From Vitrella brassicaformis CCMP3155 (lineage: Eukaryota; Protista; Chromerida): 64,000 bases of DNA. Position 1 is the first letter of the stretch; every line of letters begins with the position of its first letter. Below, in pieces: positions 18,238 through 24,572 of the stretch. Location: positions 62,001 through 126,000 of the forward strand of contig CDMY01000117.1 in assembly GCA_001179505.1 (NCBI GenBank), read 5' to 3'. Position numbers and translations under genes: made by a program. Below the pieces are notes generated by a model. It saw only the letters and a list, made by a program, of their open reading frames with translations. It made no database searches and was not told the DNA's origin.

Positions 18238-21200
18238 TCACCCCACCCTCCCCCCATCCCGGTCCTGCCCGTCTGTCAGGGTATCATCGCTTGACACGTC
18301 CGTCTCGTTGTTGTCTGCTTCCTCAGACCGCCGCCGCCTCGCCTCTCCCGCACGCCCACCCCCACCAGCAGCCACGGGCGACATTTCCTCCTCCGATGCG
18401 ATGGCCTCATCGCTGTGTCTCGGCTCTCCCTCGGCCATGTCCGCCTGCTTGTGTGTCTTGCCCTTGGGTCTGCGCTTTCTTCTCTCCGACTTCTTGGGGT
18501 GGGCGCGACGACAATAACGGATCACTGCACCAGTCCAGTGAATGAAGAGGGGGATGTTCGTCGGCGCGCGTCTCTGTATATCTATCTGTGTATGTGTTGT
18601 AGGCTGCATGGTTACGGTATTCGGGGTAGGCTTGGTCGGGCTCGTAGACGATGAACTCGCGATATGTCCCCTGCAGAAGACAAAGACAAGAGGACAGCGA
18701 AATGACCGGCCTGGCTTGTCCCTCTCTGCCTGGGCTGGTCTGGTCTAGCTACCTTTGCTGTCTCGCGATCACCAAGGACGCTGTGGTGCGGACCGCCCTT
18801 GACCAGCTGCACACCACACATGCAGGGACATTGAACAGAGATGTGCACATGCACTGCACTCATATGTGCACGTGACTGACCTTGTAGAGCTGCATGGGGG
18901 TCGGTCTGTCCTCGGGCGTCCAGAAAATGTGACCGAGACACACGCGACATAGCAGCATTGAATACACAGGGGGGTCGGCCTCATTGGCTGTGGCGGCACT
19001 GGTGGTGTCTCTGTCTGTGCTGGTGGCTGGTGCTGCTGTGGTGGATGTGTATTCGTCTCCTTTGGACGAGCATTCAGTGAAATAAATACCCTTGCCGTAC
19101 AGCGTCCCCGCCCCAGTGCCAGCGAGCTTGATCTGACACAACAAGACGACGCACCCAAAAGTATGTGAAGATCTTGCTCGTGTAAACAATGTTTGTGTGG
19201 GGGTGTGCGACGGACCGACTGTCCATACCATGAAGCCGCTGTCTGCGATGGCCTCTGCAGCTTCCATGGAGGTGCCGTGGAAGAGATACGTCTCGTTGAC
19301 CTCGGGCACCAACGAATGGGTCGTTGACTGCAGACAGACAGGTCGACATGCAGAAAATCAGGCATGAATCAATCAATCAAATCAGGCAAGTGTGTGCAAC
19401 ACTCACAGGGTTGACATGTTGCCAGGCGGCCATGGTGCGGATGTTGGACATCTGCAGTGCAGTGCAGTGCAATGGTGCACACACATGCACTGTACGTGGC
19501 CGGCCTGACTGACTGGCATTCGGACAACACCGGCCCACTAGCTTACTTTATAGAGCTCATCCTCCAGGGTGCGGACCTCGCGCAGCATCTAATGACGGAC
19601 GGACACAGTACAGTCAGTACACATGACCGTCGGGTCGGGGATGGACCGACCGATCGACGTCTGTGTGTTTGCTGGTCTGCCCTTATCACCTCGTATCTCT
19701 TGACGCAGTACTCCGTCCACAGCCGGGGGTTTTCGATGCGGTGGACGCTCGTCACCTGTCCACTCCACAACAAAAGATTGTTAACACACGCTTGCGCCGC
19801 GCCCTGCCGATCGAGTGAATGCCTCCCGCCCATATACCTTCAGCCACTTGGGCATTCTGCCCTCCCTGTCTCTTGTGCGTCTATCGAGGAACGTCTCGTT
19901 CATGAGATGCTGCACCAACCGACGCTCGCGATCACCCAACCTGCTCACACACATGCATGATCACGAGCAGCATGGCTGGCTTGTCTTCTTTGGATGATCA
20001 CATCTCCCCGAATGATTCGCTGACTCGAATCGTTCAGATTGCAGGTGCGCCTTTGCCTTAGCGTCTCTTGCAGAGGTGTCGCTGGTTAATGTTCTCCCTG
20101 GCACGTCTGCCTGTCCGGGACGGTCTTTGAGTGGGTTGGTCTCCCAATACGACGGCAGACGGAGATATTTCCGCTCTTTCTGCTCGCGATGAGTCGTCGC
20201 GCCGCTCGTCTGAAGGACAACAAACATTCACAGAGGCGTGTGTGTGTGTGAGTGTCTCCATACATGATGATGATATGGACTGAAAAGTCTCACGTCATGG
20301 GTCGTGTATATCTTGCGAATCCATCTCTGTTTCCTCCGCCGGATGAACCACAGCCGCACCAGCACACCGATGACCAGCAGCACAGTGGTGGGGACACTCG
20401 CGTAGATGACCAGCAGCACTACGTTGTTGCCGGACTTGGACGACTCGGCACACTTGCCAGACAGCTGCGGGCGACACAAACATCCATCGGCAGAAAGCAT
20501 CAGTCAGTCAGTCAGTATACTTGTCGACAGTATACTTGTCTGTCGACACACTGCCTGCCAGTGGGTGCGGTGTGTCTCACAATGACGAGCTGCCCATGAA
20601 CATTCCGCCACACAGGTCCCAACGGGGGCAGCGACGTGTCGAGGGGCGTCCAGAGGGCCGTCTGTCTCGCTACCGAGCCAGATCCGCTGACGATGACTCG
20701 CCACACCCCTGCACACACACGCAAAGGTCGAGATGACATTCATCTTGATGCGGACATGCACTGCACACCTGTGTATGAGTAGGTCCACTCGATGCGGACG
20801 GCGGCTCTGTCCTTGTGTGTCCACTGTGGTTTGCCCTCGATGTCTGGCGCGGCCCGCCGATAGTCCCCGCCCACCTGCCCTAAGGTGATGAAGCCAGCTG
20901 TAGTCCCCTCGGTGACTATCGATGACGCGAGCTGTACTGACGGGTCGGCTGAGGCGACCTTCAGAGCTACAGCCTCACAATCTGGGGGGATATAGAGGAA
21001 AGACAGAGGCAGCTGGACCAGTGTCGATTGGTGAGCGGTCTGCTGATCTGAGCTGACCTCCAAAGGCTGCGCCCCGAGATATCCCATCCAGATCTGGTTG
21101 ACAAAGACAGAGACGCTGACAAACATGTGCACGTCCGTTGACGTGTCAGTGAATGGCTCAATCAAGTTGTGCACCTTGATCCCATGTTGGCTCATCCTCG

Positions 21201-24200: not shown

Positions 24201-24572
24201 CCTTGCTGCAAAAGAGGTCAGGGGCACGTATGAGGGGTCGTTCTGGTCGTGGTAGATGGACAGCGTGTTGCTCTGGCACGTGACATCAAAGGCGGGGTAG
24301 TCCGACACGAAGCACAGACACTCCGATGTGGCAGACGAGCCCCGGTCCATTCCATTCGGAAAGACAAAGCCGCTGGGCGCTTGCAGCTGGAACACACCAA
24401 TAAAGAGGTCGTCGATGCTGACAGAGAGGCCGACCTCGATGCAGCTGCCGGCCGGGGAGGTGCTGAGGGGAGACGGCGTCACCGTGAGATCAATCTTGCT
24501 CTGGCACGACGCGGGGCGTGGATGGATCAGCAACAGCGGGGCAACCAGCACCAGGTGAAAGATTTCAGACAT
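18238..24572 (-). CDS. Type I transmembrane protein with large ectodomain and cytosolic tankyrase-like PARP/ADP-ribosyltransferase domain (~1,560 aa, 21 exons)
   Basis: All 20 GT-AG introns traced with matching phase. Features in order: signal peptide, repetitive ectodomain, TM VVLLVIYASVPTTVLLVIGVLVRLWFI+RRRKQR, then catalytic motifs NETYLFHGTS, LYGKGIYFTECSSKGDEY, MLLCRVCLG, HHSVLGDR and [20 protein letters not shown]. Alternative ATGs at 24587 and 24593. Confidence 0.85.

Follow-up and report, generated by a model that had tools for sequence, protein, structure and literature searches.

In a 64,000-nt window of the genome of Vitrella brassicaformis CCMP3155 (contig CDMY01000117.1, positions 62,001 to 126,000 of the forward strand), we describe a gene whose predicted product combines, in this order, a signal-peptide-like N-terminus, a large orphan ectodomain, a single transmembrane (TM) helix and a tankyrase-like PARP catalytic domain. 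The window is the whole stretch of DNA that was analysed; all coordinates refer to it, and features lie on its minus strand unless stated otherwise. The explanation that we favour, on balance, is that the product is a type-I single-pass protein acting as a membrane-tethered, cytosol-facing ADP-ribosyltransferase under the control of its ectodomain. Within the PARP family its layout is a new variant of architecture; it is present in database entries, and we found no characterisation of it. Moreover, the layout is recurrent rather than a one-off, since dozens of uncharacterised dinoflagellate proteins that have it are already in the databases.

Gene structure, catalytic domain and topology

The coding region (18238..24572) consists of 21 exons separated by 20 short GT-AG introns. 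A first-pass annotation, made from the letters of the window alone, had joined these exons with matching phases into 4,680 nt encoding ~1,559 amino acids (aa), and splicing them bore this out: the result is 4,680 nt long, its sole stop is terminal, the product has 1,559 aa, and all 20 introns run from GT to AG with phases that agree. An exhaustive phmmer search with a 165-aa genomic piece (exons 17-18) retrieved, at E 3e-64, a protein (P0001) that is identical to the spliced product residue for residue. This is CEL92888.1 (UniRef A0A0G4EAA9), from V. brassicaformis CCMP3155, which bears the automatic name "Poly [ADP-ribose] polymerase"; the public annotation of CDMY01000117.1 likewise calls the locus as a single gene. 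Intron lengths fall within a narrow range (60-116 nt), exon GC is 0.61 against an intron GC of 0.52, and GC at third codon positions is 0.70 in ectodomain exons and PARP exons alike, such that the coding signal is uniform along the gene. Judged by its sequence, the gene is genuine in structure and is one intact V. brassicaformis gene. The public Vitrella models come from Augustus with RNA-seq intron hints (PMC4501334), and therefore the agreement with CEL92888.1 is reassuring but is no independent cDNA.

The PARP catalytic domain occupies aa 1177-1479 (exons 12-21; 18481..20173) and opens with the P.YW motif of its family. PARP (PF00644) is the only Pfam family found on the full 1,559-aa protein, scoring 69.3 bits against a cut-off of 26.7, and the intron-retaining genomic piece alone reached 43.7 bits. 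Among solved structures the best matches are the catalytic domains of tankyrase-1/2 (E 1e-12), followed by PARP12, PARP15 and PARP14. In the tankyrase alignment LFHGT pairs with LFHGS, GKGIYF..SSK..Y with GAGIYF..SSK..Y and HHSVLG with HHSVIG, and the tankyrase triad lines up with His1328 (LFHGT; 19277..19279), Tyr1361 (GKGIYF; 19082..19084) and Glu1451 (YREFIVY; 18656..18658), the last facing the Glu of tankyrase AEYVIY. The codons proposed at first reading for His (19279-19277) and Glu (18658-18656) were thus correctly placed, and the Tyr is present as well. Across a family alignment of 70 relatives (A2) the His is invariant and the Tyr and Glu are each at least 90% conserved, whilst the Vitrella protein keeps to the family consensus at the Ser and Tyr of the nicotinamide pocket (SSK..Y) and over the C-terminal YREFIVY..YPEY block. 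Its sequence aligns with the A2 consensus without a gap at every junction between exons 12 and 21, and these splice sites are therefore supported by homology.

An AlphaFold2 (AF2) model of aa 1148-1480, built with A2, reached a mean predicted local distance difference test (pLDDT) of 84.9 and a predicted template modelling score of 0.86. Outside a Ser/Thr/Ala-rich loop (aa 1372-1398; 18971..19051), which stands at the site of the tankyrase Cys/His zinc loop and is of low confidence, the pLDDT exceeds 90. Foldseek comparison of the model with the PDB matched it to tankyrase catalytic domains (E 1e-15, target TM-score up to 0.83). Pfam profile, solved-structure alignment, AF2 model and Foldseek, several of them proposed as checks by the first-pass annotation, all agree with its reading of a tankyrase-like ADP-ribosyltransferase. 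By sequence and model, then, this is a complete tankyrase-like PARP catalytic domain with its H-Y-E triad intact, and conservation of these residues makes it probable that the domain is catalytically competent.

We consider it quite improbable that the protein instead has an adhesive or structural role at the surface, with a PARP-like tail that is a pseudoenzyme, catalytically silent or purely binding, and serves only as a scaffold. Such a tail would have precedent in the many PARP-family members that are inactive despite a conserved fold; moreover, the tankyrase zinc loop is replaced here by a poorly modelled low-complexity insert, and the Pfam alignment spans profile positions 16-121 of 199 only. 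Retention of all the catalytic, pocket and C-terminal block residues in agreement with the family consensus argues in the opposite direction, as does the high confidence with which the remainder of the domain was modelled.

Behind the domain lies a hydrophilic C-terminal tail (aa 1480-1559; 18241..18480) with a basic cluster, then an acidic stretch, and no hydrophobic tail anchor. A cluster resembling a nuclear localisation signal (NLS), KKSERRKRRPKGK (18454-18498), starts at aa 1475, within the last residues of the PARP-domain envelope. Such a cluster is odd for a membrane protein, unless the protein resides in the nuclear envelope or is released by proteolysis.

The single TM helix (aa 1122-1147, exon 11; 20345..20422) is the only segment of the whole protein with a 19-aa Kyte-Doolittle mean above 2 (value 2.41). 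It is followed by a basic stop-transfer flank, IRRRKQR (20324..20344), in accordance with the RRRKQR noted at first reading, and the net charge of 15 aa is +1 before the helix and +8 after it (RLWFIRRRKQRWIRK). At the other end of the protein, hydropathy and reading point to a signal-peptide-like N-terminus (aa 1-23; 24504..24572), with a hydrophobic core of ~13 residues (aa 4-17) and then a cleavage-like site (A-S-C, cut before Q). Because of the +1/+8 flanks, read by the positive-inside rule, and this N-terminus, the C-terminal part with the PARP domain is predicted to be cytosolic; were the N-terminal segment an uncleaved helix, the domain would remain so. The start of the PARP domain, placed by the family hidden Markov model (HMM) at P.YW, lies 29 residues past the helix, and the enzyme would therefore sit close to the membrane. 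Hydropathy, charge flanks and domain order thus give the predicted succession of signal peptide, ectodomain, single TM helix and cytosolic catalytic domain. That all four belong to one gene, with the PARP domain on the cytosolic side, had been claimed at first reading, and sequence, public model, predicted fold, charge flanks and the recurrent layout in relatives make it very probable.

Two further in-frame ATGs precede the chosen start (24587-24595), at 24593 (+7, MGMGGPR) and 24587 (+5, MGGPR), and a stop codon lies upstream of both at 24638-24636 (reading MGMGGPR-MSEIF...). The true start may be earlier, in which case the signal peptide would gain a more typical, positively charged (Arg) n-region. 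Plastid targeting was set aside on general knowledge, as there is no Phe just past the predicted cleavage site and no transit-peptide-like stretch.

Membrane-anchored relatives and the TM-to-PARP junction

Many of the 150 nearest PARP domains are preceded by one strong hydrophobic segment, 150-230 aa ahead of the catalytic His. Its flanks are typically acidic on the N-terminal and basic on the C-terminal side, for example RRRIRICLRGK, RRYLRRK and RRRSRAP. A third homology search brought the retrieved relatives whose PARP domain includes its N-terminus to 251, and among these we counted such proteins, assigning to the anchored class those with a strong TM segment at most 130 aa upstream of the P.YW start. 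This class holds 69 of the 251. The C-terminal flank is the more positive in 57 of these 69, the part before the TM segment measures 13-1,196 aa and the linker from TM segment to PARP domain 9-110 aa. The Vitrella protein, whose helix ends 29 aa before the domain start between flanks of +1 and +8, fits the anchored class.

Before the TM segment some of these relatives carry recognised domains, exclusively of extracellular types: TSP1 repeats (P0066, P0222-P0224), PAN (P0047), C-type lectin (P0109, from Polykrikos kofoidii) and 13 Ephrin_rec_like repeats (P0170). All named sources of relatives are dinoflagellates (Symbiodinium, Effrenium, Polarella, Prorocentrum, Polykrikos, Biecheleria and Yihiella). 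Several relatives are open reading frames (ORFs) of single TRINITY or MMETSP transcripts, and in these, therefore, TM segment and PARP domain share one mRNA. An architecture search had been suggested by the first-pass annotation as a way to refute its claim of novelty; our homology searches did find the layout elsewhere, in 69 of the mostly dinoflagellate relatives, yet the family that they uncovered is uncharacterised.

Two observations among the relatives stand apart. P0170, a 2,594-aa transcriptome ORF, carries NCD3G-like matches besides its Ephrin_rec_like repeats. Next come four hydrophobic segments, starting near residues 937, 1243, 1357 and 1473, and the PARP domain lies at the C-terminus. 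P0289 and P0290, from Symbiodinium, join a voltage-gated chloride channel domain (PF00654) to a PARP domain, and represent a second kind of membrane-embedded PARP fusion.

The first-pass annotation had called for RNA across the ectodomain-TM-PARP junctions. Transcript evidence comes from one small RNA run, the other runs retaining introns and behaving as DNA. From it, a spliced contig of 184 nt skips 18525-18615 and 18671-18752, which are exactly introns 20 (18525..18615) and 19 (18671..18752), and expression of the 3′ end of the gene follows from this. This contig is clipped at ~18806-18808, where exon 19 should meet exon 18. Introns 19 and 20 are hence confirmed, whereas the ectodomain-TM-PARP junctions are without RNA coverage, and the spliced sequence that joins exon 11 to exon 12 had no exact match among metagenome contigs.

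Intron 11 (20210..20293) is the sole link of the TM exon 11 to the first PARP exon 12, and we therefore weighed it separately. It is 84 nt long and of phase 0, with the donor GTGAGA, the commonest in the gene, and a pyrimidine tract with a CAG acceptor. Reading through it meets a TGA (20230-20228) and directly afterwards an in-frame ATG (20227; both within 20225-20230), six codons ahead of exon 12. Retention of this intron would formally split the product into an ectodomain-TM protein and a PARP protein, and from this one could argue that prediction has merged two adjacent genes, the first ending in intron 11 and the second encoding a soluble PARP from ATG 20227. The stop and ATG are the only formal basis for this; besides, the exon 11/12 junction lies outside the RNA coverage and the public model is from Augustus. 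The ATG, however, sits inside the pyrimidine tract of the acceptor, leaving no intergenic room for a promoter or untranslated regions (UTRs), and the intron is of typical length and correct phase. Furthermore, 69 relatives, single-transcript ORFs among them, have a TM segment 9-110 aa upstream of the same P.YW start. We therefore regard a merger of two genes as highly improbable; the TM-to-PARP junction of the single gene is, on sequence grounds, carried by a canonical intron together with the family evidence.

Short CA-rich stretches in intron 11 (20236-20257) and intron 15 (19453-19471) resemble dispersed, microsatellite-like sequence of introns. They match many other contigs from the DNA runs, and the read layout has loose ends there.

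Ectodomain, proposed mechanism and genomic setting

The ectodomain measures ~1,100 aa in all. Its larger part (aa 24-972; 21203..24503) appears to consist of divergent repeat modules, about six in number and each 125-200 aa long, from which the membrane-proximal part (aa 973-1121; 20423..21202) differs. Scans of the exon pieces and of the full protein gave no Pfam family in the ectodomain, and aa 24-1120, used as the query in a word-based search of proteins similar in length, returned only the self-match. Look-alikes in the ESM Atlas were unnamed ciliate or perkinsid clusters with scores too low to trust. Self-comparison revealed an internal repeat, aa 696-795 against 857-955 (E 5e-6), which HMM iteration widened to aa 652-810 and 821-970, the only statistically supported pair of modules. 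The remaining modules are weakly indicated by MAFFT alignment and by a motif, 'h.h.[NQH]P...W.h.h' (in its long form "h.h.[NQH]P......W.h.h"), which recurs in five of the about six modules. An AF2 model of the module at aa 813-972, with the five other modules as alignment, reached a pLDDT of 38.8 and merely hinted at beta strands. The ectodomain contains two N-glycosylation sequons.

We propose the following mechanism. The signal peptide would be cleaved and the ~1,100-aa domain of repeat modules placed in the lumen or outside the cell; one TM helix would follow and, ~30 residues on, the PARP domain would lie at the cytosolic face, with the charged tail last. There it would consume NAD+ to modify the protein itself and nearby substrates, by mono- or poly-ADP-ribosylation. 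Through ligand binding or clustering, the ectodomain could set the place and time of this modification, as in receptor kinases and receptor guanylyl cyclases. The analogy with receptor enzymes gains weight because relatives carry lectin, TSP1 and PAN ectodomains, and it makes a receptor function plausible; regulation of signalling by the Vitrella ectodomain we suggest by analogy and tentatively. By extension it is possible, rather than probable, that myzozoan alveolates (dinoflagellates and chromerids) own an undescribed class of receptor enzymes. In these a juxtamembrane PARP would be under the control of recognition domains outside the cell, be they C-type lectin, TSP1, PAN, ephrin-receptor-like repeats or, in this Vitrella gene, the orphan repeat ectodomain, and ADP-ribosylation would serve as the transmembrane signal in place of phosphorylation or cyclic nucleotides.

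Several points weigh against a membrane-tethered enzyme under ectodomain control. An H-Y-E triad is no guarantee of activity or of poly-ADP-ribosylation, and the predicted signal peptide was judged by hydropathy only. The ectodomain is without a homologue in our search, the low pLDDT of the one module modelled offers no fold for it, and a role in ligand binding is guesswork. In trees built from the first PARP domain there is a main TM-anchored clade, and the Vitrella domain falls on a long branch among mostly non-TM rows, not reliably inside that clade; when it was constrained into the clade, an approximately unbiased (AU) test gave p 0.56 and the placement was not rejected. The anchor of the Vitrella protein may have come by common descent with that clade or by independent gain. 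Moreover, RNA coverage ends at ~18808 and exons 1-18 are bare, such that the ectodomain-TM-PARP linkage is predicted here, and the public model is an Augustus prediction with no cloned cDNA (PMC4501334).

Further difficulties come from a rival reading of the same architecture, namely that the protein is a PARP resident in the endoplasmic reticulum (ER) or nuclear envelope and no signalling receptor. Its lumenal domain would serve retention, sensing of folding state or structure, and the enzyme would act on local substrates, constitutively or under stress, in the manner of PARP16, or would be released by proteolysis and imported via the basic tail cluster. The NLS-like cluster KKSERRKRRPKGK fits such a protein, as do an ectodomain that has only the two sequons and no recognisable adhesion or ligand-binding domain, and a cytosolic part of ~412 aa, which from general knowledge is small enough for access to the inner nuclear membrane. 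There is also precedent in PARP16, an ER-anchored PARP with a cytosolic catalytic domain (PMC4245714). The topology, however, is reversed relative to that of tail-anchored PARP16, we noticed no C-terminal ER-retention motif, and domains typical of the cell surface (C-type lectin, TSP1, PAN, Ephrin_rec_like) occur in relatives of the same geometry. An endomembrane role thus seems rather unlikely to us, and we retain the ectodomain-controlled enzyme as the preferred explanation.

Recurrence of the ectodomain-TM-PARP layout in dinoflagellates, coral symbionts (Symbiodiniaceae) included, turns a curiosity into a testable class of proteins. Relatives with lectin, TSP1 and PAN ectodomains are tractable through, for instance, glycan or partner binding, and the cytosolic domains, being soluble, lend themselves to direct assay. 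Should ligand control hold true, receptor enzymes would gain a new type, one that might bear on how cells recognise each other in symbiosis and on how the surface proteins of apicomplexans arose. Without ligand control it would still be a new membrane-anchored branch of the PARP family.

Upstream, the neighbour on the same strand is a GCIP-domain gene (25151-27024, minus), separated by a spacer of 579 nt that holds a (CAGCA)n-type simple repeat at ~25105-25150 (minus). Downstream, a gene for a BipA/TypA-type translational GTPase (15387-17747, plus strand) is convergent with the PARP gene. The two stop codons lie ~490 nt apart, and the 3′ UTRs must therefore be short or overlapping. Elsewhere in the window, GC falls to 0.47 at 46001-48000, compared with 0.53-0.64 in the rest.

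Comparison with known PARPs and receptors

ADP-ribosylation by the PARP family is known as a modification inside the cell, set off by DNA damage or stress among other triggers, and we know of no transmembrane receptor that has a PARP domain as its cytosolic output. Tankyrase-1/2 (PARP5a/b) is the closest match in both sequence and fold. The two share the H-Y-E triad, the GxGIYFAE..SSK..Y nicotinamide pocket and the C-terminal block HHSV.G...EY/F.I/VY...QAYPEYLI, and neither has the PARP1-type helical regulatory domain before the catalytic core. The Vitrella protein differs in being membrane-anchored and in opening its domain with a P.YW motif that tankyrase lacks. An identity as tankyrase was rejected, as Pfam matched neither Ank nor SAM on the full protein and the zinc-loop Cys/His face the Ser/Thr/Ala-rich insert.

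PARP16 is held by a C-terminal tail anchor, with hardly any of the protein in the lumen, and does not belong to the H-Y-E enzymes. In the Vitrella protein, by comparison, the TM helix is N-terminal to an H-Y-E catalytic domain and is preceded by ~1,100 lumenal or extracellular residues and a predicted signal peptide. A PARP16-like tail anchor was rejected, given that the sole TM segment (aa 1122-1147) precedes the catalytic domain and the C-terminal 90 aa are charged and hydrophilic. What the two have in common is that both are membrane-held enzymes of the PARP family with a catalytic domain that is cytosolic, as reported for PARP16 (PMC4245714) and predicted here.

Similar in architecture are the membrane-anchored PARPs of dinoflagellates (Symbiodinium, Effrenium, Polarella, Polykrikos, Biecheleria), which bear the automatic database names Tiparp, Parp11, Parp12 and Tnks. 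Together with the Vitrella protein they have the subfamily consensus P.YW, TRDR and SVLGDRE..GTYREFVVY, one TM segment before the PARP domain, a basic cytosolic flank and variable N-terminal ectodomains. In most of them the PARP domain is present twice in tandem and the ectodomain is short, with TSP1, PAN or C-type lectin recognised in some. The Vitrella protein differs in its single PARP domain and in its ectodomain, which ranks among the largest and for which no homologue was found. The first-pass annotation had held that no such receptor was described. This stands insofar as we found no description of receptor-like or transmembrane PARPs in alveolates by full-text searches of the literature or in the chromerid genome paper and its supplements; it needs qualifying in view of the dozens of dinoflagellate entries with the layout and of TM-bearing PARPs mentioned in passing by a 2014 survey of the family (PMC4245714). 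These are a sponge PARP12-like protein with an N-terminal TM segment, Rhizaria Clade 3 proteins with H_lectin and TM domains, and a rice Clade 2 PARP with a TM segment at its C-terminal end (PMC4245714).

Ecto-ADP-ribosyltransferases of the ARTC type resemble the Vitrella protein in being membrane-associated ADP-ribosyltransferases. ARTCs are R-S-E enzymes, anchored by glycosylphosphatidylinositol or secreted, with the catalytic domain outside the cell. We rejected this identity on finding no PF01129-type Pfam match and a PARP-type H-Y-E domain on the positive-inside, cytosolic side of the helix. The micronemal adhesins of apicomplexans (TRAP/MIC) are type-I proteins with TSP1 and PAN/Apple ectodomains and short, non-enzymatic cytosolic tails. 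They belong to a related lineage within the Myzozoa, have the type-I topology and use the same ectodomain vocabulary (TSP1, PAN/Apple) as the dinoflagellate relatives; the Vitrella protein differs from them in its tail, a full PARP domain, and in an ectodomain without TSP1 or PAN/Apple.

Lastly, receptor tyrosine and serine kinases and receptor guanylyl cyclases have the same topology as that predicted here, that is, a signal peptide, an ectodomain, a single TM helix and a juxtamembrane cytosolic enzyme. The effector of the Vitrella protein, in contrast, is a predicted NAD+-dependent ADP-ribosyltransferase, for which ligand control and dimerisation are suggested only by analogy. Set beside these receptor enzymes, the layout hints at an unstudied route for passing signals across the membrane.

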